Positions 17,726-58,788 of a stretch of 64,000 bases of DNA are shown piece after piece (position 1 is the stretch's first letter; every line of letters starts with the position of its first letter). Both the position numbers and the translations under genes were made by a program. The stretch is taken from positions 62,001 through 126,000 of the IMG/VR virus record IMGVR_UViG_3300040801_004034; one strand, 5' to 3'. The notes under the pieces were generated by a model. It did not search any database and was not told the DNA's origin. It was given only the letters and a program-made list of their open reading frames with translations.

Positions 17726-17771
17726 TTTGTTATTTTGTGTTCCATCTGTAATGTTTTTACTAAATATTGTT

Positions 17772-18680
17772 ATGGATTCTTCATTTTACGTATACGCATA
17801 CAAAAAACCTGACAATACAATTATATATGTCGGGAAAGGTAAGTCAATGAGATATAAAGATCATTTACTTGGTAGATCGTCAAACAATATTCTTAAAGGT
17901 AAAATCGAAAAAGGTGAAAAATATGAAGTAGTTTTTCTTGAAGAAAACCTTTCAGAAGAAAGAGCATTTGAATTAGAGAAATATTATATTAAAAAATATG
18001 GTAGACTAGATAAAGGTGAGGGTCTCCTTTATAACTTGACAGATGGTGGAGAAGGTGTGTCTGGTTTTATATATACAGATGCAGAAATATTACGACGGTA
18101 TGATAATTTGAGAACTGTAAGGGTACAGAATATTATAACAGGTGAGATAAAGGAATGGATTAGTTTAGGTGCAGCAGCTAGAGAAACAGGTATCTGTGTA
18201 GGTGGTTGGTGGTCATTACTTGAAGGTAAAACTCAAACATTATATAAAACGTGGTCATTACCTGGATACAAAAACACAAAATATGATGATAGAAGAAAAG
18301 AGGTAGTTATTTATGATAATTTATCCGAAAATTATTTAAAATATAAAAGTCGTGTTGAATGCAGTAAACAACTAGGTATTAATTTAATTCAAGTTTCTGG
18401 ATTAATGACAGGTAAATATACTCATCTAAAACGTAGATATACAATAGAACCCGAACCATATAGTGTGTTACAATCTTTACCAGTCGGTAATCAACACAAA
18501 ACAAGAAAATATTTTAACAAACCTATAAGTTTGATAGATAATCAAAACGGTGAAATTTTACATTTTGAATCAAGAAAAGAGGCTGCTGAACAACTAGATG
18601 TGTATCAAGGTGATCTATCTGGTCTTGTTCGTGGGAGAATCAAAAGTATAAAAAAAGGTCGTTTTACAGTTGCTCCATAG
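17772..18680 (+). CDS. GIY-YIG homing endonuclease with NUMOD1-like repeats
   Basis: FYVYAY...IYVGKG..R, E..AFELE, NLTDGGEG; three repeats of the F.S..EAA..L type; inserted antisense between uvsY and uvsW. Confidence 0.85.
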   Translation: MDSSFYVYAYKKPDNTIIYVGKGKSMRYKDHLLGRSSNNILKGKIEKGEKYEVVFLEENLSEERAFELEKYYIKKYGRLDKGEGLLYNLTDGGEGVSGFIYTDAEILRRYDNLRTVRVQNIITGEIKEWISLGAAARETGICVGGWWSLLEGKTQTLYKTWSLPGYKNTKYDDRRKEVVIYDNLSENYLKYKSRVECSKQLGINLIQVSGLMTGKYTHLKRRYTIEPEPYSVLQSLPVGNQHKTRKYFNKPISLIDNQNGEILHFESRKEAAEQLDVYQGDLSGLVRGRIKSIKKGRFTVAP

Positions 18681-19491: not shown

Positions 19492-20219
19492 TGAAAAATT
19501 TTTATTACACAATACCGCAATCAAAATATACATTATTGTGTGATTTCTATGCTTTAGAATTGATTAACCACTATCGTGTTTAACACGATTGTGTATTTCC
19601 AACTAAATTATCGTTCTCTATCGATTGTGCAAGAGATACGATTTGTAATTATCTCATTCCATATCTATGTGATCAAATGTTTGTTGGTATTATCGCTGAA
19701 TTCTGTTTTGAAGGTCTTGACGAAGCTAATATTGTTGAGCAAAGCAAATTTAATTATCTCACACAGTTTTTTGATACGATCAATGAAATGAAGCACTTGC
19801 CTGATTTAGTTATGTTACACAGGATTAACGTTATTTCTAACGATATTAAATTACAAATAGCCTGTCACAATCACACACGTATTGATTTTGTTCGGTTCTT
19901 TAAGTCTTTATTAGATCATGACGATTTTTGGGTAAATATCGCTGATACATACATAGAGTTACACAGTTGTAATGATATAGACAAAAAAATATTATACATA
20001 GATCAATGCATACATATTCAACATTATTCTGGTTCAGTGCTTGATAAATCATTAGATCTACTACCTATTATTGATATGTTTTTACGTATGAAACGAAAAA
20101 TAACCTGTCTTTCTGATTATATCAATATTGGTGTGTCAGTGACTATGCACAAAATACTATTAAATACTATACAGATAGTTACAAGATATGATAAAAGATT
20201 TAGGACACTGGGAATATAA
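19491..20219 (+). pseudogene. Hypothetical gene (242 codons) with an internal TAA at 19581-19583
   Basis: ATG 19491 overlaps the previous stop and is in frame with ORF 19677..20219; only one stop lies between them. Confidence 0.55.
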
Positions 20220-20592
20220 TGGTGAAATACCAGATGATTGTTTTGGTTTCATTTATGAAATCACAAACAACAAAACTAACCGTAAATACATAGGCAAAAA
20301 GCAAATGCAGAAGCGTATTAAACGCAAACCACTTAAAGGTAAGAAGCGAAACCGTATTTGCTGGTTAGAAAGCGACTGGAAAACATATACTGGTAGCTGC
20401 AGGGAACTTAATGAGGAAATAGAACAGTATGGTAAGGAACACTTTACGTTTGAAATACTAAAACTATGTTGTTCTAAATCAGATCTTGCATATAATGAAA
20501 TTAAGTTACAACTAGAAAAAGATGTGTTGTTAAGAGAAGAATATTTCAATGGCATTATCAACTGCCGTCTTGGGAAAGTTAAGCTATCTTGA
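20188..20592 (+). CDS. Short GIY-YIG nuclease conserved in T4-like phages
   Basis: FGFIYEITN....KYIGKK...ESDWKTYTGS; catalytic domain only. Confidence 0.8.
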   Translation: MIKDLGHWEYNGEIPDDCFGFIYEITNNKTNRKYIGKKQMQKRIKRKPLKGKKRNRICWLESDWKTYTGSCRELNEEIEQYGKEHFTFEILKLCCSKSDLAYNEIKLQLEKDVLLREEYFNGIINCRLGKVKLS

Positions 20593-23917: not shown

Positions 23918-24802
23918 ATGAGTTCACGCAAAAGTATACAACATCTTTACTCATTAAATAAGCCTGATGTTTACTCAATGGATTTCTTTACTCTCAAAGA
24001 GTTCGCTGAAGAATTATCTAAGATAAATGGAATCATCGAACCTGGTAATACAACAGTATCTGAAAAAGTGGATGGTTCGGCTATATTCTTCGGTAAAGAA
24101 GACGGTAAGTTTTATATGGAAAGTAGCCATTCAGGTAAGGTATTCAAAGCAGAAGATTTTGAAGATGGTTCTCATGTACGATACCCTCAACACCCTTTAG
24201 CTCGAAAAGCATTTAGGGATAATTTTGATTCAATATTTGCTTTGGTAGGTCATACAATTAGTGATTATAACAACGTTCGAATTCAAGCTGAATGGTTTTA
24301 TACACCAATGGCTAAAAGATGTGTTAATCGTCATGGTTACGTGTTATTCATCGAGACTGATTACATTAAAGCTAAGCTTGGAAGATTGAGTACGTTTGTT
24401 GTGATTGATGCACCGAAAGAAGTTCAAAACAGATTGCTTGCTATTAATACTGTTGATGTCAAATTCTTATCACCTAAAATATCATCATTTCTTATTGTTG
24501 ATCTTAGTAAAGAACTGCAACAGCTCCAAGAAGCATTAAATATAGTTGAAGAGGAAACTGATATAGAAGCATTAAACCAACCAGCACGAAAGAAAGAAGA
24601 TAGACAAAGAAGAAACACAGTATTGGAATCAATTGAAAGACACTTATTACCACTTCAGGAATCTATTTATCATAAAATATATAATAAACTAACTAATGGT
24701 ACTGGTATACTTGGTGATATTGAAGGTTTTGTAGTAACATTAGGTCATATAACATTTAAAGTAAACAATCCACAATTCATGAAACGTAAATTCAACTTAT
24801 GA
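23918..24802 (+). CDS. ATP-dependent ligase-like covalent nucleotidyltransferase (RNA-ligase-like)
   Basis: Motif I EKVDG, motif III QAE, motif IV EGFVV, motif V FKV. Confidence 0.7.
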   Translation: MSSRKSIQHLYSLNKPDVYSMDFFTLKEFAEELSKINGIIEPGNTTVSEKVDGSAIFFGKEDGKFYMESSHSGKVFKAEDFEDGSHVRYPQHPLARKAFRDNFDSIFALVGHTISDYNNVRIQAEWFYTPMAKRCVNRHGYVLFIETDYIKAKLGRLSTFVVIDAPKEVQNRLLAINTVDVKFLSPKISSFLIVDLSKELQQLQEALNIVEEETDIEALNQPARKKEDRQRRNTVLESIERHLLPLQESIYHKIYNKLTNGTGILGDIEGFVVTLGHITFKVNNPQFMKRKFNL

Positions 24803-25500
24803 AACGAAAATTTAAAATACCGACACCAAAAACAAAAACCATTAACTTTGAATCAGCATACGATAAATTCAGTGATATTTCATCGCTACTGAATGAGTTT
24901 GATGAACAGAAGCATAAAAACGTGTTCGTTTTTTATCCTGGTAGGTTTCATCCATTCCATACCGGTCATACATCTATTTATCATGCATTGCAACAGCAAT
25001 TCCCTGACAGTCATGTTATTATAACAACATCTGATAAAGTTGATCCGCCAAATTCTCCATTCACGTTTGATGAAAAATACAAAATGATGGTTGTAGCTGG
25101 TGTTGATCCAGATTCAATTGCTGAAACACAATCACCATACCGAGCTACTGAAGTAGTGGAAGTACTTCCTGAAAATGCAATTACCATTTTTGCAATATCA
25201 GAAAAAGATATGAAAGGATCCAAAGCTAGAATCAACTTCAATCCTAAGAAAGATGGTTCACCAAGCTATCTTCAACCATTTGAATCAATTGAGGAATGTA
25301 AAGGTAGAATGGAGCACGGTTATGTAACAACATTACCTACATTGGATTTTGATTTAATGGGTAGCAATATCAATTCTGCAAGTGAATTAAGAAAAATATA
25401 TGCAGATGCAGATGAAATTAAGCGCCAGCAAATTATACAATATTTGTATGGTCGATTAGATGAAGAAATCTATAAGATCTTCAACCTTAAGATCGATTAA
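24799..25500 (+). CDS. HxGH (cytidylyltransferase/NMNAT-like) nucleotidyltransferase
   Basis: YPGRFHPFHTGH, PFTFDEK and SASELR motifs. Confidence 0.85.
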   Translation: MKRKFKIPTPKTKTINFESAYDKFSDISSLLNEFDEQKHKNVFVFYPGRFHPFHTGHTSIYHALQQQFPDSHVIITTSDKVDPPNSPFTFDEKYKMMVVAGVDPDSIAETQSPYRATEVVEVLPENAITIFAISEKDMKGSKARINFNPKKDGSPSYLQPFESIEECKGRMEHGYVTTLPTLDFDLMGSNINSASELRKIYADADEIKRQQIIQYLYGRLDEEIYKIFNLKID

Positions 25501-25884: not shown

Positions 25885-26787
25885 TTATTTAAGCTTATGC
25901 ATAATAGCTAAACCTTCATCTAATTTGATAGATGGCACCCACCCTATATGTTCCCGTATCTTCGAGCAATCGACTCTACAACCATTGTAATCATTTGCTC
26001 TTGCTGGCTTGTTAACAACTCTTGAAATACTATCTGTTAGATTGATAATCTTTTCAGCAAGTTCCTTCATAGTAACTATTTCATCACCATCAATATTGTA
26101 TGTCTGGTTTGCGCATATCGGGTTTAATACTGCTACATTAGCACTAGCATGGTCATTAACATTAAGAAATGAACGTGTTGGTCCATTATCATCACCTTGT
26201 ACAACAATATTCCAATGTTTGTTAGCACTTTCAAAAAATCTCATAACAACACTGCTCGGATGACCATTAGGACCATATGCTGTACCATATCTCAAAATTG
26301 TATAATCAATACCATATACTGCACTATACATCTTCACGATTTGTTCACCAATGAGTTTACTTTGTGAGTATATATTACGTTGTGTTTCATCAGGTAAACG
26401 AGTTGTTTCATTCGCTGAATCTAATCCTGAATATACATGCACACTACTAGGAAAAATAAACCGTTTTATGTTATGCTTTCTGCATAATTCAAGTGCGTTG
26501 GTCAGTCCTTTAATATTAAGTTCGTTACCCTTCTCAGGATTTTGTTTATATTCATTTACAATTGTAACAGCTGGAAAGAAAAACATGCAATCAAATTCCT
26601 TGTTATCTAACAATTTATCAACCGTATCCAGGTAACATATGTTACCGTATGTTTCATAGAATGATTCAGTAAACCGATTATGTGTATGTGAAATATCAAT
26701 ACTAACAACTTCATGATTATCATCAAGTAATTTTTGACATGTTTTTTGGCCTATAAATCCTGATCCACCTAATACTACAATTTTCAT
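25885..26787 (-). CDS. NAD-dependent nucleotide-sugar epimerase/dehydratase
   Basis: GGSGFIG, SS..VY, YSQSK and LRYGTAYGP motifs. Confidence 0.9.
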   Translation of the reverse strand: MKIVVLGGSGFIGQKTCQKLLDDNHEVVSIDISHTHNRFTESFYETYGNICYLDTVDKLLDNKEFDCMFFFPAVTIVNEYKQNPEKGNELNIKGLTNALELCRKHNIKRFIFPSSVHVYSGLDSANETTRLPDETQRNIYSQSKLIGEQIVKMYSAVYGIDYTILRYGTAYGPNGHPSSVVMRFFESANKHWNIVVQGDDNGPTRSFLNVNDHASANVAVLNPICANQTYNIDGDEIVTMKELAEKIINLTDSISRVVNKPARANDYNGCRVDCSKIREHIGWVPSIKLDEGLAIMHKLK

Positions 26788-26845
26788 ATGATATTATTAT
26801 ACATTGTCATTCTTTGATGTCAATCATATCTGCATAAATAATATT

Positions 26846-27604
26846 ATGTCAACAATTTCAAATACGGGTCCGATTAGTGCAAGTCAAATCGAGAACGTGA
26901 GTTTCAATTCTATCGCAAGTAATTCACTCGATAGAGATGCTATCAGTGTTAACCAACACTTTACTTTCCTTCAGACAAATGGTGCTACCCCTAGTAAAGA
27001 TGGGGACCCGGATAAGAAATTCAGCGATTTTAGAAATAGTTCTATACCAACAATTTTAATTGAAATTACTGGTGAAACAGCTACACGATATCAAAATGTG
27101 AATGATGGATTACTAGATATTTATATTGATACAAACACATTCGTGAGAGATAGTAGTGGTACAATTTCCGTTTTTTATTCATTGAATAAAATTCAACCAG
27201 CAACTAGATACGTCGCTGAAAGTGAAGTGGGGGTTGTTCCATGGACTGAATTTACCACATCATCTACAGACGAAAGTCTTGTAATTGATAATGGTGATGG
27301 TACTATAAACAATTTAGATGCAGGTACACAATATATTTTATATGTATATGATGGTAATTCTAATGATATAGCAGTAGATTTAACACTATTAAAAAAATTC
27401 ATTACTGTAGGTTACAGTACAACAACATCTGATGTTATAGGTGTACCAGATGTATCATTATGGACAAAACGAGATCGATTAATAAGATCTGGAAATAATA
27501 CAATATATAATAATGGTACATATTGGAATGAAACAACCGAATACATTAACGCAGTTAATACAGCTAGAGTAGCGGAGATACAAAAACACAACGACGATTT
27601 ATAA
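26846..27604 (+). CDS. Hypothetical Ser/Thr-rich protein, possibly virion-associated
   Basis: Late promoter at 26835-26840; TGPISASQI N-terminus resembling fibre-like proteins. Confidence 0.5.
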   Translation: MSTISNTGPISASQIENVSFNSIASNSLDRDAISVNQHFTFLQTNGATPSKDGDPDKKFSDFRNSSIPTILIEITGETATRYQNVNDGLLDIYIDTNTFVRDSSGTISVFYSLNKIQPATRYVAESEVGVVPWTEFTTSSTDESLVIDNGDGTINNLDAGTQYILYVYDGNSNDIAVDLTLLKKFITVGYSTTTSDVIGVPDVSLWTKRDRLIRSGNNTIYNNGTYWNETTEYINAVNTARVAEIQKHNDDL

Positions 27605-27605
27605 T

Positions 27606-28409
27606 ATGACAATAAAAGAAAGACGATTAGATTTACTTAAGAAATACATCATAAAAATAGAGGGTGAATTTTTTACACTATGCAATGATTTTTTTGCACC
27701 GTTTGAAGGAGCTGGTCAGTTTATTGATGATCATACATTGAAAGTTTTTAATATCACAACAAACCAGCCTTGTACAATCGATATTAGAAGTAGTTTCGTA
27801 TTTACCTTTTCTGACCCTGCAAATGAGCACCCAAGCTTATTATTATTAAAGACTGAAGATGAACAATTTGAATATAATATGTTTGTTATATCAAATTTTG
27901 TTGAACGCGCTAAACTATTTGAATTAATCGTAAACCGTGCATCTTTATTCAATAAAAAAATATATAAAACAGTAAAGGAATCATGTGAAAAATTATTTAC
28001 AACACATAAAATCGATGATCATTCTACAATGTTTTGTCTAATGTTTAATATTAACCCTATAACCGGTAGCGTTAGATTACCACAGTTTAGAAAAACATGG
28101 AAAATGGTAGTTGCGGTGTATAGTGAGAAGGCAAAAACGAAACTACGTTCTGAGATTGAAAAGAATGCAGAAAATGCGGATGATCTTGAAACTCTTATTG
28201 ATGTAGTCGACCAGTCTGTGTCACACTGTTATGATGAAATAGATGAAATTACTGATATTGAAGATGCAATGTTAACATGGCCGAGAGTTTTGTTACCCGC
28301 ACCGGAGTTTATTGTAAATAGTAACACCGGTCGGTTTATTTACATGGATTTACCGAGTTCAGTGAGTAAAATAAAGGATGACGACTCAGACGAAAACGAA
28401 GCCGGTTAG
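27606..28409 (+). CDS. Hypothetical protein
   Basis: 267-aa ORF; C-terminal helical region ending TWP..LLPAP. Confidence 0.5.
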   Translation: MTIKERRLDLLKKYIIKIEGEFFTLCNDFFAPFEGAGQFIDDHTLKVFNITTNQPCTIDIRSSFVFTFSDPANEHPSLLLLKTEDEQFEYNMFVISNFVERAKLFELIVNRASLFNKKIYKTVKESCEKLFTTHKIDDHSTMFCLMFNINPITGSVRLPQFRKTWKMVVAVYSEKAKTKLRSEIEKNAENADDLETLIDVVDQSVSHCYDEIDEITDIEDAMLTWPRVLLPAPEFIVNSNTGRFIYMDLPSSVSKIKDDDSDENEAG

Positions 28410-29031
28410 AAACGTACTCGTAATAGCTCCACACGCTGACGACGAAATATTAGGTTGTGGCGGTACACTTTTGAAGCTTGTTGAACAAGGGTACACAACA
28501 TATTGCGTTATCTGCTGTAAGCGAAAAGATGAGAAACAGATACAAGCAGTAAGAGGCAATAAAAAGATACATACAAAAAACCTCTTTTTTTTAAATTACC
28601 CGGATGAGCGTCTTTATACCAAGAAAGATGAATGTCTTAAGAAAATAGAAGCTGTATATAACAGTCTACAACCTGAAATAGTATTCATCCCATCATATAA
28701 TGACATCAATTTAGATCATAAAGTGGTAAACGAGTTAAGTTTGATTGTTTGTCGACGTTTTCAGGAACATACACCTTCAGTTGTGTATGAATATGAAGTA
28801 CCATCAACATCTACCCAGTCTCCTGGAACATTTCAACCTAATGTTTATTTTACTCTTACTACTGATCATGTCGATACGAAAGTTCTAGCATTTTATCATT
28901 ATATTGATGAAATAAGAGAGTTTCCTAACCCACGATCTATTATAGGTTTACAAACATACTGTAAGTTTAGAGGTATGGAATGTAATAGTGAATATGCTGA
29001 AGGTTTTAAGGTTGTTTTTCAGAAATTATAA
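28378..29031 (+). CDS. PIG-L/LmbE family N-acetyl-sugar deacetylase
   Basis: VIAPHADDEILGCGG, D.N.DH, YEYE and AEGF motifs. Confidence 0.9.
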   Translation: MTTQTKTKPVRNVLVIAPHADDEILGCGGTLLKLVEQGYTTYCVICCKRKDEKQIQAVRGNKKIHTKNLFFLNYPDERLYTKKDECLKKIEAVYNSLQPEIVFIPSYNDINLDHKVVNELSLIVCRRFQEHTPSVVYEYEVPSTSTQSPGTFQPNVYFTLTTDHVDTKVLAFYHYIDEIREFPNPRSIIGLQTYCKFRGMECNSEYAEGFKVVFQKL

Positions 29032-29045
29032 GATATAATTGATGA

Positions 29046-29687
29046 ATGAAAACAACATGGGAAAATGTAGAACTGTTTGAAGAGCTTGTAGCATGTTTTG
29101 CAGGAGCAACATATGGTGTAGCTGTTGATAGTTGTACTAATGCAATATTTCTCTCATTGAAATATTATCATGATATGATTGCTAATGATGTTCTTGATAA
29201 TACACTTGTTGTCCCGTCAAGAACATATATTTCTGTTCCTATGCAGTGTAAACATGCTGGATTTGATGTTGTGTTTGAAGATATCAAATGGGAAGGTTCC
29301 TATAACTTCAGAGGACTACCAGTTATTGATAGTGCACAACGTTTTGAAAGGAACATGCACATACCAGGTAGTGTTAGATGCTTATCATTCAACTTCAAAA
29401 AGATTTTAAGCTGTGGTAAAGGCGGTATGATATTGACTGATAGTCAGATAATGAGGGATTGGCTTGTTCGTATGAGATATGATGGACGTTCGACAGAGAA
29501 ATATGGTGATATTAACAACGTGACCGTTCCAGAAATAGGTTATCATATGTATATGACACCAGAAACAGCAGTAAGAGGTATTGAAGCTTTTTATAGGCTC
29601 CTTGAACATGAAAATAAGATGTGTGGTGTAAGTGGTAGAAGTTCAGACTACGGTATCGATCTTTCAACTTTAGATTGTTTTAAATGA
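29046..29687 (+). CDS. DegT/DnrJ/EryC1/StrS PLP aminotransferase (C-terminally short)
   Basis: AVDSCTNAIFLSL, IDSAQ, CLSFNFKKIL..GKGGMILTD, GYHMYM. Confidence 0.9.
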   Translation: MKTTWENVELFEELVACFAGATYGVAVDSCTNAIFLSLKYYHDMIANDVLDNTLVVPSRTYISVPMQCKHAGFDVVFEDIKWEGSYNFRGLPVIDSAQRFERNMHIPGSVRCLSFNFKKILSCGKGGMILTDSQIMRDWLVRMRYDGRSTEKYGDINNVTVPEIGYHMYMTPETAVRGIEAFYRLLEHENKMCGVSGRSSDYGIDLSTLDCFK

Positions 29688-30517
29688 AAAAAATTATTAT
29701 TGTTGGAAGTAACGGTATGCTTGGTCGATATATGACAACATACCTCAAACAGTATTATACTGTTGTTGGTTTAACAAGATATGATTACGATATTGCAGCT
29801 CAAACCAATAAGAGTGTTAAATTTTTCACTGATACAACATCACCAGGTGATGTTGTCATTAACTGTGCTGGTATATTGAAACCGTATTATAAAACACTCA
29901 GTTTTGATGAAACATATCTGGTAAATGCATTTTTTCCGTCATCGCTGAGTCATGAATGTATTGTAAATAACCGACACTTCATTCATTTTAGTTCAGATTG
30001 CGTATTTGGTGATAAAGGTGATTACGTTGAAACAGACGAAAAGGATGGGTATGGTGAATATGCAAGACAAAAAGGTAAAGAGCCGTTATTTGGTGTGACT
30101 TTTAGAACATCATTCATAGGTGAACAACCAAATCATACCGATCCTAGTACTGCAGGTCTTTTACAGTGGTTGAGACTGAATAATAACACTCAACTCAATG
30201 GATATACTAACTGTTTATGGAATGGTCTTACTTGCTACCAAGTCTGTAAGATTGTAAAAGATACAATTGATGAGCGCTATTTTGGTAACAGAACCCAACA
30301 CCTTTTTACTCCAGAGAAGATATCTAAACATGATTTATGTAAATTGATAATCGATGAATATGATCTAAATATTGATCTAGTACCAACTGAAGCTGGAAGT
30401 ATTATGGGTACACCTATTCATGGTGTTTTAGATAGAACACTTTCAACAATTCATGAACCTATAAAAGTACCTGATATAAAAACACAAATCAATGAACAAC
30501 ATAGTTTCAAGTTATAA
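29684..30517 (+). CDS. RmlD-like sugar-nucleotide reductase
   Basis: GSNGMLG, INCAG, HFSSDCVF, YARQK and RTSFIG motifs. Confidence 0.88.
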   Translation: MKKIIIVGSNGMLGRYMTTYLKQYYTVVGLTRYDYDIAAQTNKSVKFFTDTTSPGDVVINCAGILKPYYKTLSFDETYLVNAFFPSSLSHECIVNNRHFIHFSSDCVFGDKGDYVETDEKDGYGEYARQKGKEPLFGVTFRTSFIGEQPNHTDPSTAGLLQWLRLNNNTQLNGYTNCLWNGLTCYQVCKIVKDTIDERYFGNRTQHLFTPEKISKHDLCKLIIDEYDLNIDLVPTEAGSIMGTPIHGVLDRTLSTIHEPIKVPDIKTQINEQHSFKL

Positions 30518-31589
30518 TGAGTGGGACCCACTCGAAGAGGTCATAGTAGGAGCAGGTTTACCTGATACAATACCTGGTATCGATATTTCGTTTAGGTTAT
30601 TCTTTTATGAAAACATCGGAAATGCTCAATTTGATGTATATGATTACATTACAAAACAGCATATCGAAGAACATGGTGAAGACCTTGATAAATTCGCTGA
30701 TTTACTCAAATCCTTAGGTGTAGTTGTAAGGAGACCTGTTGTACCACCTAAGATTAATAAGGTTCAAACACCATGGTGGGAATCAGGTTTACACCCTGCT
30801 CTTAATGTTAGAGATCAGTGTATGGTCGTTGGTGATACCATTATAGAATCGCCGCCAACACTTAGATATAGATATTTTGAAAATGATTTGTTAAAGCCTT
30901 TGTTTCTTGAATATTTCAAACAAGGGTGTGGATGGATTCAAGCTCCCAAATCGACGATGGTTGATAATAGTTTCGATAAATCATGGGTAAATGATGATGG
31001 TATTTTGTTAAAGGATCAATGTGATATATTTTCATCAAAGGAAACATATATTGACCATGGATTAGAAATGATGTTTGATTGTGCTAACTGTATGAGACTC
31101 GGAAAGCATATATTGATGAATGTGAGTAATAAGAACCAAGCTCTTGGTTTACAATGGTTACGTAAAGTTCTTCCGGATTATACAATTTGGGATTGTCCTG
31201 TTGCTGATTCACATATAGATTCATCATTCTTACCACTTAAACCTGGTTTAGCTATTATTACGAAACCTGAAATTGTTTCAAAATTACCCGAACCATTACA
31301 AAATTGGGATCTAATTCATATACCAATGATACAACGCACATCTGATGAATATTCACATCAAAACATCAAGCTTGCATCACCGAGAATTGAACTTAATGTA
31401 TTTTCAGTATCACCCGAATTAATTATTTGTCATCCCCAGTATGAGAAAGAGCTTAATAAAGTTCTCAAGCCATATAAAATAGAAGCAATTGGATCACCAT
31501 TCAGACATTGTGAAATATTTTCTGGAGCTCATCACTGTACAACATTAGATATAAGAAGAAATGGAAAATTACAAAATTACTTTGAGTAG
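30492..31589 (+). CDS. Amidinotransferase (glycine / inosamine-phosphate amidinotransferase family)
   Basis: VSSYNEWDPLEEVIVG, RD, HID and GAHHCTTLD catalytic motifs. Confidence 0.92.
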   Translation: MNNIVSSYNEWDPLEEVIVGAGLPDTIPGIDISFRLFFYENIGNAQFDVYDYITKQHIEEHGEDLDKFADLLKSLGVVVRRPVVPPKINKVQTPWWESGLHPALNVRDQCMVVGDTIIESPPTLRYRYFENDLLKPLFLEYFKQGCGWIQAPKSTMVDNSFDKSWVNDDGILLKDQCDIFSSKETYIDHGLEMMFDCANCMRLGKHILMNVSNKNQALGLQWLRKVLPDYTIWDCPVADSHIDSSFLPLKPGLAIITKPEIVSKLPEPLQNWDLIHIPMIQRTSDEYSHQNIKLASPRIELNVFSVSPELIICHPQYEKELNKVLKPYKIEAIGSPFRHCEIFSGAHHCTTLDIRRNGKLQNYFE

Positions 31590-32358
31590 TGTAAGCGTAC
31601 CTAGAAAGTACACTAATGCTATTTGTTTTAACAGCGACTTTAAGTATTTAAAGTTTGCAGTGCCGTTATACAATTCACTTGTTGCTAATAATATCAAAGC
31701 GGATCTCGTTTGTAGATGTATAGATTTTACAGATGACGAAAAACAACAAGTACGCCAAATGTTACCTGGTTGTAATCTGATTTTTGATAACCCAAACATT
31801 TCACCAGCTAAAAATATGCTTAAAGAAACAGGGTTGAATTTTCACCAGGTTTTTAAATCATCACCATACACAACCGATGGTATTCAGAATATGATAGCTG
31901 GTGGTTTATATAGTAAACGAGCTGCTTATTCATGCCATGTAAGGTTCAACACTATTCTTGATCTACTTAACTCGGATTATGAAAAAGTATTATGTCTTGA
32001 TTGTGATACTATTTGTATACGAGATTTCAGTCATATATTCGAATTAGAACATGGTGATATTTTTACTGTTTTCGATAACGGTGAGTATTTTATGAATGAG
32101 GGTTTGTTGATGTTTTCAAATAATGAACTGACATATCAATTTGTTCAAAATGTAAGGGATCAAATATTCACTGATGATAATTGGTTACGATGGGATGCAG
32201 ATTCTGAAGCACTTGTTGATAACTTCATAGATGATCTCAAAATCATTGATTTAGGGTATGAATATAAAGATAGATCACATAGTGATGATGCATTTATGTG
32301 GTCTGGGGATGCTCTTAGTAAATTCAAACAAAAATTTAAAACAAAACTTGGTGAATAA
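31561..32358 (+). CDS. GT-A glycosyltransferase (GT8-like)
   Basis: RF...LL....VLCLDCD DxD motif, NEG, W..D. Confidence 0.7.
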   Translation: MENYKITLSSVSVPRKYTNAICFNSDFKYLKFAVPLYNSLVANNIKADLVCRCIDFTDDEKQQVRQMLPGCNLIFDNPNISPAKNMLKETGLNFHQVFKSSPYTTDGIQNMIAGGLYSKRAAYSCHVRFNTILDLLNSDYEKVLCLDCDTICIRDFSHIFELEHGDIFTVFDNGEYFMNEGLLMFSNNELTYQFVQNVRDQIFTDDNWLRWDADSEALVDNFIDDLKIIDLGYEYKDRSHSDDAFMWSGDALSKFKQKFKTKLGE

Positions 32359-32983
32359 AGTAGTACATATTTTATGGTGGGACATTACTGAAAAACCAGA
32401 CTTCTTCGATGAAAATATCAGTTCATGGACTGAACATAACCCTGAATGGACTGTTAAAGTATGGGGTAGACAGGAATGCTATTCATTGTTAAAAGTATTC
32501 TACCCTAGATACTTCTGTATGTTCGAAGAATATGAACATGATATTCAAAGAATTGATGCAATAAGATATTTTATACTTCATTTAGATGGTGGGTTATATG
32601 CTGATATCGATATCAAGTGTAATAAATGTATTGATAATATTATCGATAATGAGGATGTTTTATTTAAAGAAGGAAAGAATCAAACAAAGTTATTCCCGAA
32701 TCTTACAAACATTACAAATAGTATAATGTATAGTACAGGTAAGAGTGTTTTTTTCAATTACATAATTAAAATGCTGTTTTTAACTAAACAGAAAGATGAA
32801 CAGAATGATGTGTTAAATGTATTATACTCAACTGGACCTGGTTTAGTAACTGCCGCTCATGATTTATTCAATACAAGACATGTTACAGTTCACCCAAGTA
32901 CATTTTTCGATGAACCACCTTGTATATATGGACAGCATTTGTATATGAATTCATGGTTTAATAAAGAGAATGTTATTATATGA
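32351..32983 (+). CDS. GT32 (OCH1-like) glycosyltransferase
   Basis: SW...NPEW, QRIDAIRYFILHLDGGLYADIDI, TGPG, H....SW; GTG start at 32351. Confidence 0.88.
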   Translation: MNKVVHILWWDITEKPDFFDENISSWTEHNPEWTVKVWGRQECYSLLKVFYPRYFCMFEEYEHDIQRIDAIRYFILHLDGGLYADIDIKCNKCIDNIIDNEDVLFKEGKNQTKLFPNLTNITNSIMYSTGKSVFFNYIIKMLFLTKQKDEQNDVLNVLYSTGPGLVTAAHDLFNTRHVTVHPSTFFDEPPCIYGQHLYMNSWFNKENVII

Positions 32984-33972
32984 TTTTAACTAAAAGACAA
33001 ATAGATGCAATGGTAAATACTATACCAAATACATTTGATAATATTCTTCATGAATCTAGTATACTGGTCGATAAGAGTAAGTTTGATATCAGCACTATTG
33101 ATGATCATGGTGATATAATAACTATTGATACGATCAGTAAATGTAACTTACACTGTTCATTTTGTAGAGGTAGTATATCTAATATAGGTGAACTTTCAAA
33201 ATTACAAACAATGACTCAAACTGCATTTGAAATATTTGTAAAAAGAGCAACTGATTATGGTATTAAGCATATTGAAATGACACCTGCTATAGGAGAGCCG
33301 TTTATTGATAAGGGTATTATCGATAAGCTTAAACATCTTGAAGAGAATGATAAAATAGAGAGTTACATCATAACAACAAACCTCACTATGTGGAAGGATG
33401 TACATTTTGAATTCATAAAAACATGTAACAAGATTGTATTTAATATTTCACTTTATGGATATGATGAAGAATCATACAGCAAATCAACAAACCGTAAAAA
33501 CAAGTTTCAAACGTTCTATGCAAATTTTACACGTTTAGCAGATATCGTTCATGAGTATGACAATGTATATATGATTATTTTCATGAGATGCGGATTACCA
33601 TTTAATCACAGGTTTCCGAGAACTCCTATTTTTTACGATGTATTCAATTTAGCAAACCTTAAAAACTGTTGGTTAAATAACGGTGATATTGAAAATATCA
33701 ATCGTGCTGCAAATCTTGAAGGGTTTGAAAAGAAGTCACGTCAACGTTCTGGTATATGTCCGAATGGCCCTGGAATCGGCGGTGGTGTAATAGCGAATGG
33801 TGATTTTCTCTTCTGTCCATTCAATGATATCAACAGAGTTGGTGTTGTCGGTAATTTATATACCCAGTCGTTAGAAGAAATATACAGTGGTGATAAATGG
33901 CAAGAAATTTTAAATAATCATATGAATAATACATATATCGGTATTTGTAAAAACTGTGATGAGACGTGGTAG
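32980..33972 (+). CDS. Radical SAM / SPASM-twitch protein
   Basis: CNLHCSFC, GEP, TTN; C-terminal C..NGDFLFC..VGNL..C..C. Confidence 0.9.
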   Translation: MILTKRQIDAMVNTIPNTFDNILHESSILVDKSKFDISTIDDHGDIITIDTISKCNLHCSFCRGSISNIGELSKLQTMTQTAFEIFVKRATDYGIKHIEMTPAIGEPFIDKGIIDKLKHLEENDKIESYIITTNLTMWKDVHFEFIKTCNKIVFNISLYGYDEESYSKSTNRKNKFQTFYANFTRLADIVHEYDNVYMIIFMRCGLPFNHRFPRTPIFYDVFNLANLKNCWLNNGDIENINRAANLEGFEKKSRQRSGICPNGPGIGGGVIANGDFLFCPFNDINRVGVVGNLYTQSLEEIYSGDKWQEILNNHMNNTYIGICKNCDETW

Positions 33973-34940: not shown

Positions 34941-35969
34941 TTATTTAAGCATTGATTCGTATACCTCTTTTGGCACACCTGCTGTAAAGCCACCTGGTAC
35001 ATTCTTAACGATTACCGAGATAGCATCATGACTATGTAAACTCTCCCAATGTCCAGCAACAATCTTAAAGTCAAGAATCCGTTCATCATCATCAAGCTGT
35101 TCATACATTAATCTTACAGCATCTTCAACAAACTTAAGATTAGCACCGTTCAATTCTGCAAATGCTTGTTCATCTTCACGCTTAACGATAACTTGCGTTT
35201 CCGTCTGTAACGCTTCAAGTAACATTTCTTGGAGATCCTCAATCCATACATCTTCATCAAACACGATTGATACTCTCGCTGTAGAACGTTGTGAATGCGG
35301 TACTGTTGCTCTGTTTCTATATTTTTCAGCATGTTCTGCTAGCTCAAAACTACATGGGCATGCTGATGAGTATACAAAGTCAAAGTGTATAAGTTTTTTC
35401 ACACTTCCGTCTTTAGCAATATCACATTCAAAACACACATCATAATATTGATAACCCTCATTATCTGATCTTAGACTCTTTTGTAAGATAGGGTATGAAA
35501 ACTTAAGCATGATTCTTGCATCGAACACTTCAAGATTTTTCTTATAATCATTCAATATATTCACAATATTTTCGAAATCAAACACTTTATCTTTATGAGC
35601 ATAGAACGATCTCATAATACGTGACATGTTGATTCCCTTTTTATGTGCTTCAAGCGAGACAGAACCAGTAATTGATGTTTCTAACGTAATTGTTGAACCA
35701 TCTCTTTTAAGAACTTTAAGTGGTAACCTAAAATTATGAATACCTACTTGCTGAATTGCAACAGGGGCTCCTTGAATCAAACTTGATGGACCATTTTGTA
35801 AATCAGGTAAAGATTTAATGTATTTTTTATTAGCTACGACAGTATCATCGTATTCCCTAATAGGCGGTTTATATGATGATGCATATTCATCACCCATAAT
35901 ATCATGAGCAATTTTATCTTTATCGCCACTCATCTCGTCATCACCTAACCAAATATATTTCTTATTCAT
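34941..35969 (-). CDS. folE2: GTP cyclohydrolase IB FolE2
   Basis: LPDLQN, IQQVGI, KGINMSRI, YSSACPCS, HSQRS, KREDEQAF, FVEDAVR, ESLHSHDA. Confidence 0.95.
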   Translation of the reverse strand: MNKKYIWLGDDEMSGDKDKIAHDIMGDEYASSYKPPIREYDDTVVANKKYIKSLPDLQNGPSSLIQGAPVAIQQVGIHNFRLPLKVLKRDGSTITLETSITGSVSLEAHKKGINMSRIMRSFYAHKDKVFDFENIVNILNDYKKNLEVFDARIMLKFSYPILQKSLRSDNEGYQYYDVCFECDIAKDGSVKKLIHFDFVYSSACPCSFELAEHAEKYRNRATVPHSQRSTARVSIVFDEDVWIEDLQEMLLEALQTETQVIVKREDEQAFAELNGANLKFVEDAVRLMYEQLDDDERILDFKIVAGHWESLHSHDAISVIVKNVPGGFTAGVPKEVYESMLK

Positions 35970-38188: not shown

Positions 38189-38947
38189 ATGATCGATACA
38201 GCTAAAGAAACATTGTTTATGAGTGATGACAAGGTATTTTACACTTGTGAAGGGGAAGGTGAATATGTCGGTAAGCCATCAGTATTCTTTAGAGTATCGA
38301 TGTGTAATTTAACTTGCAAAAATTTCGCATCAGAAGATTCACCACATGGGTGTGATTCATACATTTCATGGAGTGTTAAAAATAAAATGACATTTGATGA
38401 AATCTTTGAATATATGGAAGAAAGACGCTATATTGAATTTCTTAGAAACGGAGCATTACTTAAATTAACAGGCGGTGAGCCATTAGTAAGTCAAAAGAAA
38501 TTACTCAAGTTCATCGAAGCATTTATAGAGAGATATGAGTTTTATCCTAGAATCGATTTTGAAACGAATGCTACCATTATGCCAGACAAAAGATGGGTAG
38601 AAGAATTTGGTGCAACATTTACAACATCACCTAAGCTTTCTACGAATGGTGATCCGGAGAGTAAAACATACAAACCTGATGTGCTTAAATGGCACGTTGA
38701 AAATAATAGTGGTTTCAAATTCGTTATTACTTGTTCAGAAGATATTGAAGAAATTTGGAGAAAGTATGTCGATGAGCGTAATGATATTAATGTTCCGCTA
38801 GATCGTGTATGGTTCATGCCTTGTTGTGGTTCACGCAGTGAGCATATAGAGAACGCACCTGCTGTAGCAGAATATGCTAAAGCGTGTGGTGTTAATTTCA
38901 GTCCTAGAATGCATTTATTAATCTGGGACTTAGCTTTACGAGTTTAA
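38189..38947 (+). CDS. queE: 7-carboxy-7-deazaguanine synthase QueE
   Basis: FYT.EGEG...G.PSVF.R..CNL.C...CDS, TGGEP, ETN, SPK, SPR.H. Confidence 0.92.
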   Translation: MIDTAKETLFMSDDKVFYTCEGEGEYVGKPSVFFRVSMCNLTCKNFASEDSPHGCDSYISWSVKNKMTFDEIFEYMEERRYIEFLRNGALLKLTGGEPLVSQKKLLKFIEAFIERYEFYPRIDFETNATIMPDKRWVEEFGATFTTSPKLSTNGDPESKTYKPDVLKWHVENNSGFKFVITCSEDIEEIWRKYVDERNDINVPLDRVWFMPCCGSRSEHIENAPAVAEYAKACGVNFSPRMHLLIWDLALRV

Positions 38948-41465: not shown

Positions 41466-42284
41466 ATGAGATTAAGTATCAGCGGAACAGCAAGCATCGG
41501 AAAGTCAACATTAATAGGTGATATGCTTGCTACATGGCCAGCATTCGAACACACAAAAGTGTCATATAGAGATATTCTTACGAATCAAAATTTACCACAT
41601 AGTAAAGAGTCAACAAAAGAGACACAATGGGCTATTTTGAATCATATGGTTGATCAGATGCAAGGGTACACACCACAAGATAAAGTAATCTTTGATAGAT
41701 GCCCTCTTGATAATTTAGTTTATAGCATGTGGTTATTTGATAAAGGTCTTGGTGGTGTCGACGAGAAGTTTATTGATAAGTGTCTTCCTATTGTATCTGA
41801 AAGTATGAAATCACTTGATATCATATTTTTCATTCCTATGACAAAATTCAATAAAATGAATATTGTAGATAACGGTACAAGAGAAACAGATCCGGTTTAC
41901 ATTTCTGAAATTGATCAAATATTCAAAGGTCTCCAAGCTCAGTACCAACAGCACCCGCAAGAAAATCCTTTCTTTCCGCGAGATGATTCACCAGCTCTTA
42001 TAGAGATTTTCGGATCAAGAAAAGAACGTATTCAAATGATAAAACTTTATCTTGATGATGATGGTGATGTTATTGGTGGGGAAAATGGAGCTAATGAAGT
42101 TTTCTCTCCGGAAAATATCAGTTTAGTTGAAGATCTTTTAAAGGAGCAACAAAAACTAAATGATAGTGAAAAAGCTTATACCGCTGAAATGGACAAAATT
42201 AAGGACTTTGTTAGACATAACAAAGGTGTAGATGTCGGTGTTGATATCAGAAAGCTTTCAAAAGATAAATATGATCTTTATTAA
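41466..42284 (+). CDS. P-loop nucleotide/nucleoside kinase-like protein
   Basis: ISGTASIGKST and IFDRCPLDNLVY motifs. Confidence 0.75.
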   Translation: MRLSISGTASIGKSTLIGDMLATWPAFEHTKVSYRDILTNQNLPHSKESTKETQWAILNHMVDQMQGYTPQDKVIFDRCPLDNLVYSMWLFDKGLGGVDEKFIDKCLPIVSESMKSLDIIFFIPMTKFNKMNIVDNGTRETDPVYISEIDQIFKGLQAQYQQHPQENPFFPRDDSPALIEIFGSRKERIQMIKLYLDDDGDVIGGENGANEVFSPENISLVEDLLKEQQKLNDSEKAYTAEMDKIKDFVRHNKGVDVGVDIRKLSKDKYDLY

Positions 42285-42638: not shown

Positions 42639-43238
42639 ATGTGGAAAATAGCTAAACAATTCGATTTCTGTTACGGTCATCGCGTATGGAATCAAACTCT
42701 CAATACTGACTTTTCGATTGACGGTCGTTGTGTATGTCGTCACCTTCATGGTCACCAAGGAACAGTTAAAGTGTTTCTTGAAGGTGATGAATTAACAGCT
42801 GGTATGGTAACAGATTTTAAGCACCTTAACTGGTTAAAGAAATTTCTTGATGATGTTTTAGATCATAAGTTCATTATTGATAAGAATGATCCGATGATTG
42901 ATGCTATTATACCATTCAATTGTATTGATGGTGTTGAAAAACGAGAGAACGGTTGGGTATTTGATGGACAACTTAATATAACTACATTATGTTTTACAAA
43001 ACATTTTATACACAACACAGGTTATTCGACGATTAATACAAATCTAATTGCAAAACAAACACCTGATATGCAAGATATTCTTGAAGGGTTCGTTATCGTG
43101 GATTTTATACCAACATCAGAAAATCTCTCTAAATGGATTTGTGATATTGCTAATGCAAAGATGAATAAGATTGGTGTGAAAGTAAGTAGGGTTCAATTCT
43201 TTGAAACTCCTAAATCACAAGCAAACTATTATGTGTAA
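42639..43238 (+). CDS. queD: 6-carboxytetrahydropterin synthase QueD
   Basis: F.FCYGHR, C.HLHGH, GMVTDF, LDHKF, PTSEN and ETP motifs. Confidence 0.92.
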   Translation: MWKIAKQFDFCYGHRVWNQTLNTDFSIDGRCVCRHLHGHQGTVKVFLEGDELTAGMVTDFKHLNWLKKFLDDVLDHKFIIDKNDPMIDAIIPFNCIDGVEKRENGWVFDGQLNITTLCFTKHFIHNTGYSTINTNLIAKQTPDMQDILEGFVIVDFIPTSENLSKWICDIANAKMNKIGVKVSRVQFFETPKSQANYYV

Positions 43239-44108: not shown

Positions 44109-44948
44109 ATGGGTAAAATAGGAATTGCAATAATAACTTGTGATCGACCAAAATTTCTTGAAAAATGTTTGGAATCGATACCGTTTAATTATAATAGATC
44201 ACCAAAAGTTGTAGTTAATGATGGTAATCACAAATACAATCTTGAACAGATTGAAAACATGTATAGTAAGAAACTTGTATCTACCGACATGAAACTCATC
44301 CAGGAACACGGCAAGGAATACCAGGGTGTTTGTAAGTCAAAGAATAAAGCTTTCAAATACCTTCTCGAACAAGATTGTGATTACATTTTTATCATAGAAG
44401 ATGACATGGTCTTTACAGGTGATGTATTCGAGGAATATATCAGAGCTTATAAATCAACAGGTATTCATCACTTCAGCTTTGCTTACCATGGTCCTGCTAA
44501 TAGAGGTAATGTATCCCATGGTACACCACAGCCACGTAAGGTGGTTAACTATGGTGATGTACAAATTTCTCTAAATGCTAACTGTGTCGGGGCTGTATGC
44601 TTTTACACACGTCAATGTCTTGAAGATGTAGGTTTGTTTGATGAAAACTTTGATAAAAATAACTTTGAACATGTTGATCATACATATAGATTAGCTAAAG
44701 CAGGTTATACCACACCTTATTGGTGGTTTGCTGATATTGCAAACAGCTATGATTATATAGATGAACAAGCATGTAGTGAAGAAAATTCGTCTATCCGTAG
44801 AGGTGATAATTGGCAACAAAAAATATGGGAAAGTGCTCAGTTGTTTAAAGATAAACACGGATATATGCCAGCATGGCAAGGGTGTGTACCAGATACACCA
44901 CTTGATAGTGTTTTAATCAATCTCAAAAAGCTCTGTATAACAAGATGA
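44109..44948 (+). CDS. GT2-family glycosyltransferase
   Basis: IITCDRP, VVVNDG, IEDD, VGLFDENF and EH.D motifs. Confidence 0.9.
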   Translation: MGKIGIAIITCDRPKFLEKCLESIPFNYNRSPKVVVNDGNHKYNLEQIENMYSKKLVSTDMKLIQEHGKEYQGVCKSKNKAFKYLLEQDCDYIFIIEDDMVFTGDVFEEYIRAYKSTGIHHFSFAYHGPANRGNVSHGTPQPRKVVNYGDVQISLNANCVGAVCFYTRQCLEDVGLFDENFDKNNFEHVDHTYRLAKAGYTTPYWWFADIANSYDYIDEQACSEENSSIRRGDNWQQKIWESAQLFKDKHGYMPAWQGCVPDTPLDSVLINLKKLCITR

Positions 44949-46537: not shown

Positions 46538-47291
46538 ACTATACTGGAGCGGAGGAGCTAACTTCGGAGATGCATTATCTCCGGTTTTATACAAGTTAAT
46601 AACTGGTTTTGAACCTATTAGTGTTAACGAGCACCAATCACCCAAGCATGTAGCAATAGGATCTATATTAAACCATGCAAAACCAGGGGATACAGTGTGG
46701 GGATCCGGGTTGGCATGGCGATATGATAAGGTTTCACAGGGTATTAACATAAAAGCAGTAAGAGGACCGTTATCCCGTGATATTTGCTTAAGAAATGGTG
46801 TTGATTGTCCTGAAATCTACGGTGACCCAGCTATGTTACTACCTCGTTTCTTTGAAAAATCGGAAACACAGTATAAACTAGGTATAATACCACATATTGT
46901 TGATTTTAAGCTTGTAAACATACCAGCTCAGTATAAAAATGATGTTTTGAAGATAGATTTAACACAATCGATTGATGAATGTATCAAAAACATAACAAGC
47001 TGTGATAAAATAGTGTCAAGTTCATTACATGGACTCATTGCAGCTGATGCATATAACATACCTAACACATGGTGTCGGTTTAGTAATGGTGTTTTAGGTG
47101 ATGGTACGAAATTTGCTGATCATTTCCTTGCTATAGGTAAACGAGATATGAAATGTATTGATTTATCACGGAACAACACAAAGAAATACTCATTTGATGA
47201 TATTATTAACCATATAAACGATTGTGATGTGTCTAAATATACAGATATACAGGGAGATGAATTGCTCAATGCATGTCCATTTGAATATTAA
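46524..47291 (+). CDS. Polysaccharide pyruvyl transferase family protein
   Basis: NFGDAL, IGSIL, WGSG, AVRGPLS, GDPA, SSSLHGLIAADAY. Confidence 0.88.
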   Translation: MMMNKLYWSGGANFGDALSPVLYKLITGFEPISVNEHQSPKHVAIGSILNHAKPGDTVWGSGLAWRYDKVSQGINIKAVRGPLSRDICLRNGVDCPEIYGDPAMLLPRFFEKSETQYKLGIIPHIVDFKLVNIPAQYKNDVLKIDLTQSIDECIKNITSCDKIVSSSLHGLIAADAYNIPNTWCRFSNGVLGDGTKFADHFLAIGKRDMKCIDLSRNNTKKYSFDDIINHINDCDVSKYTDIQGDELLNACPFEY

Positions 47292-57900: not shown

Positions 57901-57923
57901 ACGGAACATCTATAATATTCAGT

Positions 57924-58484: not shown

Positions 58485-58488
58485 TATT

Positions 58489-58758: not shown

Positions 58759-58788
58759 ATTATTATTTTCGTATGATATAATCATCGA

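Follow-up and report, generated by a model that had tools for sequence, protein, structure and literature searches.

The window analysed here is a stretch of 64,000 nucleotides (nt), positions 62,001 to 126,000 of the 221-kb viral contig IMGVR_UViG_3300040801_004034 from a microbial-mat metagenome. Its positions 25885-33972 hold a divergent epimerase of the short-chain dehydrogenase/reductase (SDR) type and a nine-gene, mostly overlapping operon. The operon is, with good confidence, a coherent sugar pathway that includes an amidinotransferase, and the balance leans slightly towards a product that bears a guanidino sugar. The reading preferred here is held tentatively: the operon may encode a cytoplasmic glycan-building and tailoring pathway by which a short oligosaccharide with a guanidino sugar is placed on a surface protein of the virion, probably the long tail fibre.

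The operon and its enzymes

The nine genes at 26846-33972 form an operon, since six of their eight junctions overlap (by 32, 4, 26, 29, 8 and 4 nt) and the remaining two are a 1-nt spacing and a 14-nt gap. Coordinates were taken from the open reading frame (ORF) list of the window and starts were refined by gene calling. An initial annotation of the window had named the protein families and had described a divergent epimerase beside a nearly fully overlapping operon; the families were borne out by the ORF list, Pfam and phmmer searches of PDB chains, and the epimerase by a match to PF01370 (8e-42). The cluster proteins contain zero transmembrane segments.

The amidinotransferase (365 amino acids (aa); 30492-31589, +) matches phrog_25854 at 1e-40, and its residues 3-364 align in phmmer searches of PDB chains with StrB1 (1e-47), SxtG (2e-44), HsvA (4e-43) and AGAT (6e-42), at 147-167 bits. 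Pfam (PF02274) returned no match for it. From these alignments the protein is assigned to the L-arginine amidinotransferases of the pentein superfamily. The catalytic residues, namely the triad Cys349/His241/Asp196 with Asp108 (R107-D108) and Asp243, do not vary among 10 viral homologues and line up with the StrB1 motifs. At E<=1e-10, 1545 homologues were found. The best 120 of the homologue clusters are 46-65% identical to the window protein and metagenomic, on contigs of up to 238 kb, some including Tara sequences; with at least 120 such sequence clusters the gene set is widespread and conserved. The closest bacterial protein among 185,579 species-representative genomes is only 36% identical.

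Eight related contigs were compared, which with the window make nine members of one clade; the identity of their amidinotransferases to that of the window is 60% (L004), 58% (L020), 50% (L021), 63% (L022), 52% (L103), 55% (L104), 49% (L105) and 45% (L007). In a tree of 123 rows (quick IQ-TREE, midpoint root only) the window protein lies inside an all-viral clade (SH-aLRT 98); the protein of Campylobacter phage CP220 joins this clade at 95, and its sister, with a support of 99, is one Nocardia protein. A Streptomyces bikiniensis clade and a large cyanobacterial and proteobacterial clade are placed elsewhere, and a second viral lineage (cyanophage S-SCSM2R, L009-L016) lies nearer the actinomycete StrB-type superclade. 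Phylogeny had been proposed in the initial annotation as a way to decide between StrB and AGAT; because of its position in the all-viral clade the enzyme is assigned to neither, and represents a viral clade of its own. The locus of the nearest bacterial relative (Nocardia sp. NPDC052566, L023, 4304-19348) is an uncharacterised glycoside-type cluster of the natural-product kind, with two PIG-L genes and genes for an SDR, a UDP-sugar dehydrogenase, a glycosyltransferase (GT) of family GT1, a carbamoyltransferase, an aromatic amino-acid lyase, a YqcI/YcgG protein and a GFO/IDH oxidoreductase.

The last gene of the operon (32980-33972, +) encodes a radical S-adenosylmethionine (SAM) protein of 330 aa with a SPASM-type domain (PF04055 6e-13, PF13186 2e-8) and the SAM-cluster motif CX3CX2C at C55/C59/C62. 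Its best PDB sequence match, a weak one (8.7e-5), is BtrN (4m7t), the 2-deoxy-scyllo-inosamine dehydrogenase of butirosin synthesis. C259, C278, C322 and C325 align with four BtrN cysteines that we take to be auxiliary-cluster ligands. There are only five C-terminal cysteines against the seven of a full SPASM set, and from this pattern the protein is classed as a BtrN-like 'twitch' enzyme rather than a full SPASM protein. Orthologues occur in L004, L020, L021, L104 and L105 and as gp087 of CP220. A role as QueE was ruled out by the twitch domain and by a separate QueE-like gene at 38189-38947.

The aminotransferase (213 aa; 29046-29687, +) belongs to the DegT family of pyridoxal-phosphate (PLP) enzymes, as first annotated (PF01041 6e-17, in two pieces; 62 bits against a curated cut-off of 19.8), in a conserved truncated form. 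Compared with the two-domain fold-type-I architecture of ~360-400 aa, one beta-alpha unit and all of the C-terminal domain are missing from it (profile positions ~95-183 and 245-360). The PLP lysine K119 (SFNFKK; SFxxKK) and the pyridine-binding aspartate D95 (VIDSAQ; DSA) are invariant in eight orthologues, in an alignment from which one row of an annotated GenBank record was left out. These mini-DegT proteins, of 195-213 aa and 39-61% identical to the window protein, are encoded in eight phages: the window, L004:15101-15721, L020:15269-15883, L021:9378-10004, L022:3806-4432, L103:2455-3081, L104:16552-17181 and L002:6293-6880. Since the short form is conserved across these eight phages, it is judged to be under selection.

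The PIG-L/LmbE-family de-N-acetylase (217 aa; 28378-29031, +; PF02585 1e-19, 71.7 bits against a cut-off of 28.2) retains the metal-binding PHADDE (HADDE) and DH motifs; its PDB relatives are a diacetylchitobiose deacetylase (1e-9), an LmbE-related protein and BshB. To our knowledge, all characterised PIG-L members act on glycosides of N-acetylglucosamine (GlcNAc). The divergent extended-SDR epimerase (300 aa; 25885-26787, -) has the motifs GGSGFIG and YSQSK, its best PDB relative being UDP-glucose 4-epimerase 4zrm (7e-24), and has orthologues in the clusters of L004, L020, L021, L022, L103 and L104; a 4,6-dehydratase was ruled out by SSVHVY in place of TDE. The RmlD-like SDR (277 aa; 29684-30517, +; PF04321 1e-15) shows the motifs GSNGMLG and YxxxK, is matched by known profiles in its N-terminal half only, hits PDB 1vl0 at 1.5e-6 and has orthologues 36-42% identical in L004, L020, L021 and L022. 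Two GTs follow the amidinotransferase, a GT8-like protein (265 aa; 31561-32358, +; PF01501 1e-7, PF03407 2e-4; DxD = DCD), which has one to five paralogues per related cluster, and a GT32-like Gly_transf_sug protein (210 aa from the called start; 32351-32983, +; PF04488 5e-14; DxD = DID). PDB sequence searches with both were uninformative; from their families both are classed as GT-A enzymes of glycoconjugate type and not as natural-product GT-B enzymes.

The two leading genes, annotated at first as hypothetical and possibly virion proteins, indeed belong to no known family. The first (252 aa; 26846-27604, +) is an ORFan with a pI of 4.4, 21% Ser+Thr and 10% Asn, for which weak atlas leads point to phage fn3/Ig-like proteins; its composition alone makes it a candidate structural or acceptor protein. 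The second (267 aa; 27606-28409, +) is a conserved, non-enzymatic member of the cluster and not a recognisable virion protein. Word-indexed homology searches with the two proteins gave self-matches only. A four-sequence profile of the second found 168 representatives in a library of 1.8 billion proteins, and the members (P0121-P0270) are nearly always encoded inside or beside these phage glycan clusters. The family, in which a C-terminal WPxxLLPxP motif is invariant, is present in 8 of the 9 clusters (the window, L004, L007, L020, L022, L103, L104 and L105). An AF2 model of the window protein (pLDDT 84) combines an N-terminal SH3-like beta-barrel with a long bundle of helices; searches of Pfam families and of PDB and BFVD folds gave no match. 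An atlas lead to a kinase-like protein was rejected, the model having no kinase fold and no match in PDB or BFVD, and a tail assembly chaperone was rejected as well, the weak Pfam match in 1 of 50 family members being too weak. In the model's light the protein could possibly be an adaptor, chaperone or acceptor.

The epimerase gene is preceded by a sigma-70-type promoter, TTGACA-16 nt-TATAAT (26796-26823, -), which matches the consensus at 12 of 12 positions and ends 8 nt before the ATG. The operon is preceded by the motif CATAAATAAT (26833-26842, +), which has no -35 box, ends 3 nt before the ATG at 26846 and is a candidate T4-late-type promoter that would give a leaderless transcript. TAAATAA occurs at 36 sites in the window, 15 of them 3-10 nt upstream of an ORF start and free of a -35 box, and since the motif precedes that many starts, TAAATAA(T) is regarded as a real signal and a second promoter class, one that resembles the T4 late TATAAATA box. 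Both classes end 3-10 nt before start codons, which implies that most of the messages are leaderless. Across the window the two classes are TTGACA-N16/17-TATAAT and the -35-less (A/T)TAAATAAT; besides the pair described above, examples of these promoters lie at 2871, 21210, 34508, 36013 and 54683 (+) and at 39845 (-).

Conservation of the gene set in related phages

The full core set was defined as amidinotransferase, mini-DegT, RmlD-like SDR, epimerase, PIG-L, twitch/SPASM radical SAM protein and GT8-like GT. It is present in seven phages, the window and L004, L020, L021, L022, L103 and L104, in differing gene orders; the mini-DegT of L104 was seen in gene calls, though dropped by a separate ORF filter. 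L105 and L007 retain the amidinotransferase, PIG-L, the radical SAM protein and GTs. Each of the 9 clade members has a PIG-L gene along with the amidinotransferase gene, and so does the Nocardia locus. Because the set is conserved across rearranged loci, the cluster enzymes are judged to work together and the amidinotransferase to be functionally tied to the sugar genes. The initial annotation would have given way had the amidinotransferase been unlinked to the sugar genes in relatives; the linkage is kept in all eight contigs despite rearrangement.

Individual relatives carry further genes. Amidinotransferase genes are duplicated in tandem in L004 (8884-11110); a tryptophan halogenase and PhyH are encoded at L105:11134-13340, KdsA, KdsB and a class I/II aminotransferase at L022:4406-7629, and a GT9 heptosyltransferase-type domain, a GT31 and a methyltransferase in L021. 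L007:4412-5800 encodes an amidotransferase of asparagine-synthase type, a kind of enzyme by which acetamidino sugars are made.

A copy of a bacterial amidinotransferase locus was considered as the source of the cluster and rejected: among 80 bacterial loci only that of Nocardia has a PIG-L homologue, a few others have an epimerase homologue, and mini-DegT, the RmlD-like SDR and the radical SAM protein are found in 0 of 80. Because these three are missing there, the gene set is taken, on gene content, to be a phage invention and not a copied bacterial cluster.

No cyclitol synthase (2-deoxy-scyllo-inosose or myo-inositol-phosphate synthase) appears in the Pfam results for the window and the eight related loci, in agreement with the initial annotation, and neither does an exporter, self-resistance gene, transporter, phosphotransferase or GT-B enzyme. 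The GT families in the same Pfam results are GT8, GT32-like, GT2 and GT31 only, all GT-A. Wzx/Wzy (flippase, polymerase) and a lipid-carrier transferase were found in no locus examined.

Two phages known from culture carry reduced modules. In Campylobacter phages CP220 and CPt10 (Firehammervirus), gp086 is an amidinotransferase 33% identical to that of the window and in the same clade, gp087 is a radical SAM protein of the same family as the product of 32980-33972, and two GT-A genes are next; CP220 differs in having five or more radical SAM genes, and PIG-L, mini-DegT and the RmlD-like SDR were not detected in it. Cyanophage S-SCSM2R has a block with an AHBA_syn/DegT protein (195 aa, 39% identical to that of the window), a radical SAM protein, an amidinotransferase and several GTs, and differs in that its amidinotransferase belongs to the second viral lineage and that the block is mixed with 2-oxoglutarate-Fe(II) oxygenases and GT25 and lacks PIG-L. 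In full-text searches of the literature, papers mentioning such phage genes were found only for CP220/CPt10 (Timms et al. 2010) and S-SCSM2R (2025); the former module was described as interchangeable with no function assigned (PMC2853527), and neither paper assigns a function or draws a link to glycans or fibres (PMC2853527, PMC12801897). Both CP220 and S-SCSM2R are culturable and thus offer direct test systems with a reduced module.

Acceptor of the predicted glycan

The initial annotation had left four targets open, namely virion proteins, DNA, the host surface and a small-molecule effector. The choice is narrowed towards a virion protein by gene order, product and acceptor both being predicted from sequence. 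In six of the eight relatives (L004, L020, L022, L103, L104 and L105) a long tail-fibre gene directly precedes the cluster on the same strand and in tight packing, the first enzyme gene of L103 beginning three bases past the end of the fibre gene. The fibre genes encode 649-1620 aa where complete, with Mtd_N and Peptidase_S74 intramolecular-chaperone domains. The gene of the 27606-28409 family stands one or two genes after the fibre gene in L004, L020, L022, L104 and L105, and inside the enzyme block in L007 and L103. The linkage to tail-fibre genes is missing in the window, L021 and L007.

In CP220, about 2 kb separate the module from the baseplate lysozyme and PAAR genes that precede it. The module is the largest difference between CP220 and CPt10 (PMC2853527), a variability that by analogy matches the behaviour of surface-glycan loci. 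Purified S-SCSM2R virions contained a second amidinotransferase and a prolyl hydroxylase (PMC12801897). At the start of the window operon, the -35-less TAAATAAT motif and the acidic, Ser/Thr/Asn-rich ORF are also counted for a virion acceptor. Such an acceptor is possible and is favoured because of the tail-fibre synteny, the location of the CP220 module, the S-SCSM2R virion proteins, the lack of transmembrane segments in the cluster proteins and the missing genes for lipid-carrier, export, cyclitol and hydroxymethylase functions.

The window cluster resembles the virus-encoded systems of virion glycosylation in having soluble GTs and tailoring enzymes and no lipid carrier. In those systems, namely the capsid and tail-tube glycans of mycobacteriophages and the glycan machineries of chloroviruses and mimivirus, soluble virus-encoded GTs and tailoring enzymes act in the cytoplasm, no lipid carrier is used, and the genes are linked to structural genes. 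We know of no virion-glycosylation system with an amidinotransferase, a radical SAM sugar oxidase or a PIG-L deacetylase. Virion glycosylation by phage-encoded enzymes is a young field whose examples so far come mostly from mycobacteriophages and giant viruses and involve ordinary sugars; glycans on capsid and tail tube of mycobacteriophages are described by Freeman et al. 2023 (cited in PMC12619734). Full-text searches of the literature gave no report of tail-fibre glycosylation in T4-like phages. Virus-encoded glycan synthesis is thus known as a kind, and the predicted guanidino chemistry, undescribed for any virus, would be new.

The chemical steps can be proposed from the enzyme families. 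The GT-A enzymes (GT8-like and GT32-like) would build a short glycan on the acceptor from host UDP-sugars, partly 4-epimerised by the divergent SDR, and this glycan would include a residue of GlcNAc or N-acetylgalactosamine (GalNAc). PIG-L would remove the N-acetyl group from the GlcNAc or GalNAc already attached, and the amidinotransferase would pass the amidino group of L-arginine by way of Cys349 to the freed amine, giving a 2-guanidino sugar and ornithine. Such a sugar would be 42.02 Da heavier than a hexosamine (HexN), with a calculated residue mass of 203.0906 Da, 0.011 Da above N-acetylhexosamine. A second amine could arise if the twitch radical SAM enzyme oxidised a hydroxyl to a ketone, as BtrN does, and the truncated DegT enzyme then transaminated it. 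The RmlD-like SDR, together with the epimerase SDR, may set the stereochemistry, and the 27606-28409 product might serve as adaptor, chaperone or acceptor.

Several points weigh against decoration of a virion protein. The glycan, the guanidino group and the acceptor are all predicted from genes alone. The window operon stands among replication and auxiliary genes beside a SegE homing endonuclease and not beside a tail-fibre gene, so that its link to the fibre rests on the relatives; tail-fibre neighbourhoods also hold host-interaction cargo, and synteny is therefore no proof of a fibre substrate. The 26846-27604 product has no Pfam, NCBIfam or PHROG match and no homologue among 5.8 billion proteins. 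The mini-DegT could be inactive or act in another role, and its AF2 model is too poor for use (pLDDT 42). As to timing, the perfect sigma-70-type promoter of the epimerase suggests early expression. The late promoter first annotated at 26835 coincides with a motif that is real, preceding 15 ORF starts; late timing of the operon is no more than plausible, since a TAAATAAT motif is found ahead of the ribonucleotide reductase gene as well.

The best-surviving competitor, in our estimate unlikely, is remodelling of the host envelope, in which a cationic sugar would be placed on the core of lipopolysaccharide (LPS) or lipooligosaccharide, on a capsule precursor or on a surface glycoprotein, and would block superinfection or sticking to debris. 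Genes added in relatives, KdsA and KdsB in L022 and the GT9 heptosyltransferase-type domain in L021, are typical of LPS inner-core synthesis; they support LPS-core remodelling and at the same time count against a virion acceptor. GT8 is a family of LPS-core alpha-glycosyltransferases, and since LPS-core transferases are peripheral and free of transmembrane helices, the lack of such helices here permits an envelope target. A location beside receptor-binding genes would also suit receptor-related functions, and the module is hypervariable between close relatives (PMC2853527). Against this, a lipid-carrier, flippase, ligase or other membrane-bound step is found in 0 of 11 phage loci, and serotype conversion would bring no benefit to virulent T4-like phages, which lack a lysogenic stage. 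The tight, co-directional packing behind a tail-fibre gene suggests late co-expression with structural proteins, and Campylobacter, cyanobacteria and mat bacteria would have to share an acceptor.

A diffusible product and DNA are less likely destinations. The former, which we regard as improbable, would be an aminoglycoside-like antibiotic or effector directed against competitors, the host ribosome or rival phages. The aminoglycoside-like logic noticed in the initial annotation is upheld as far as enzymes go: the best solved relatives of the amidinotransferase and the radical SAM protein are StrB1 and, with four aligned cysteines, BtrN, and with a BtrD-type PIG-L and a DegT transaminase the operon shares four enzyme families with the aminocyclitol pathways of streptomycin (StrB1/StsC) and butirosin (BtrN/BtrS/BtrD/BtrM). 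The shared reactions are probably oxidation of an alcohol to a ketone by the radical SAM enzyme, conversion of the ketone to an amine by DegT, deacetylation of a GlcNAc-glycoside to the glucosamine-glycoside by PIG-L and amidination of an amine to a guanidine by the amidinotransferase. The nearest bacterial amidinotransferase lies in a cluster of natural-product type, and three genes of S-SCSM2R were labelled 'antibiotic synthesis genes' by its authors (PMC12801897). Unlike the aminocyclitol clusters, the phage set has no cyclitol synthase, kinase, GT-B enzyme, exporter or (self-)resistance gene, in the window or in relatives. It has a 213-aa DegT and, with two to five or more copies, multiple GT-A enzymes of glycoconjugate type, where aminoglycoside and macrolide pathways use GT-B enzymes. 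Its amidinotransferase falls outside the StrB clade, and it resides in a virulent phage, in relatives beside tail-fibre genes, a synteny that a diffusible product leaves without explanation.

Still less probable is hypermodification of DNA, by which a sugar chain on a hydroxymethylated base would be made cationic, aiding packaging or blocking restriction. T4-like phages commonly glycosylate their DNA, cationic base modifications are known in phages, and hypermodification of DNA by viral GTs with diverse glycans is documented (Pyle et al. 2024, as cited in PMC12619734). However, neither the Pfam-scanned genes of the 64-kb window nor the surroundings of the related clusters include one of pyrimidine hydroxymethylase type, and a complete route to 7-deazaguanine is already present in this phage. 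The position of the cluster after tail-fibre genes indicates expression late in infection, when modification of DNA would be wrongly timed. CP220 DNA is reported to be fully substituted with dADG, and no sugar adduct is mentioned in the account consulted (10.1101/2023.04.13.536721). Finally, an ordinary arginine:glycine-type enzyme, making guanidinoacetate or an amidinated polyamine and lying among sugar genes by chance, would fit the near-equal distance to AGAT, SxtG, HsvA and StrB1 (147-167 bits) and the label 'glycine amidinotransferase' of named homologues, but is highly improbable given the PIG-L linkage in all nine clade members and the whole sugar set in seven despite shuffled order, the overlap of the gene with both operon neighbours and the separate viral clade.

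Decoration of a virion protein can be carried further into a model that is doubtful as a whole. The tail fibre or another virion protein would carry a guanidino sugar made by tailoring after attachment, a new class of protein-linked glycan; the DegT of 213 aa and the SDR of 277 aa, both unusually small, would have shed domains to reach a macromolecule-bound substrate, the conserved 27606-28409 product would be an adaptor joining enzymes and fibre, and the cationic glycan would modulate how the phage adsorbs to anionic host surfaces and, like O-antigens, would differ from strain to strain. If decoration of this kind is true, it would add a new sugar, would put amidinotransferases and twitch radical SAM enzymes to a use not seen before, and would point to a so far hidden level at which T4-like phages determine their host range, and it would explain both the radical SAM/amidinotransferase module of the Campylobacter phages (2010) and the 'antibiotic genes' of the cyanophage (2025).

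Genome context of the window

The phage of the window is classed from its genes as a large, uncultured and distant T4-like phage. Its GC content in the window is ~33%, and its T4-like repertoire there includes gp46/47-like SbcCD, helicases, UvsX/RecA, SegE-type homing endonucleases and a ribonucleotide reductase. Its family-B DNA polymerase is ~29% identical to cyanophage and pelagiphage enzymes. A megablast search with the operon against 50,697 phage records gave zero nucleotide-level matches; because of this and of a DNA polymerase only ~29% identical to those of known phages, the phage is considered new.

Genes of 7-deazaguanine synthesis are scattered through the window at 837-1322 (-), 2156-2824 (-), 5141-5932 (-), 34941-35969 (-), 38189-38947 (+) and 42639-43238 (+). 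The set comprises FolE2 GTP cyclohydrolase, the QueE-like radical SAM protein (38189-38947), QueD, QueC, a class-II glutamine amidotransferase and a nucleoside 2-deoxyribosyltransferase-like protein, and the precursor pathway is judged complete from these assignments. QueD retains the CxxxHGH motif and hence is not DpdL. The class-II glutamine amidotransferase is separate from QueC, as may be compared with the Gat-QueC of phage 9g. No DpdA was recognised in the window. In the phage DNA, dPreQ0, dG+ or a related modification is probably present.

A second glycan set at 44109-47291 (+) consists of a GT2 (279 aa), a 530-aa protein with GT2, GT7C and GT10 matches and a polysaccharide pyruvyl transferase; a DUF366 protein is encoded near it at 47873-48463. 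Four genes of homing-endonuclease type, at 4436-5107 (-), 17751-18680 (+), 20188-20592 (+) and 60503-61108 (+), comprise two SegE-like GIY-YIG proteins, one GIY-YIG protein with NUMOD and one HNH protein. One of these genes lies 6 kb upstream of the operon, and the nearby homing endonuclease may be related to the differing genome position of the cluster. A cytidylyltransferase-like protein is encoded just upstream of the cluster (24799-25500, +) and an AAA_28 protein at 41466-42284 (+); the two may represent unrelated NAD salvage. At 54694-59337 (+) genes for a cobalamin adenosyltransferase and a NADAR-domain protein come after that of a ribonucleotide reductase of 1068 aa, an arrangement that suggests a B12-dependent reductase with its own cofactor activation. 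Two tRNA genes, Phe-GAA and Thr-TGT, are present in the window, and the coordinates listed for such minor features include 63549-63797 (+).

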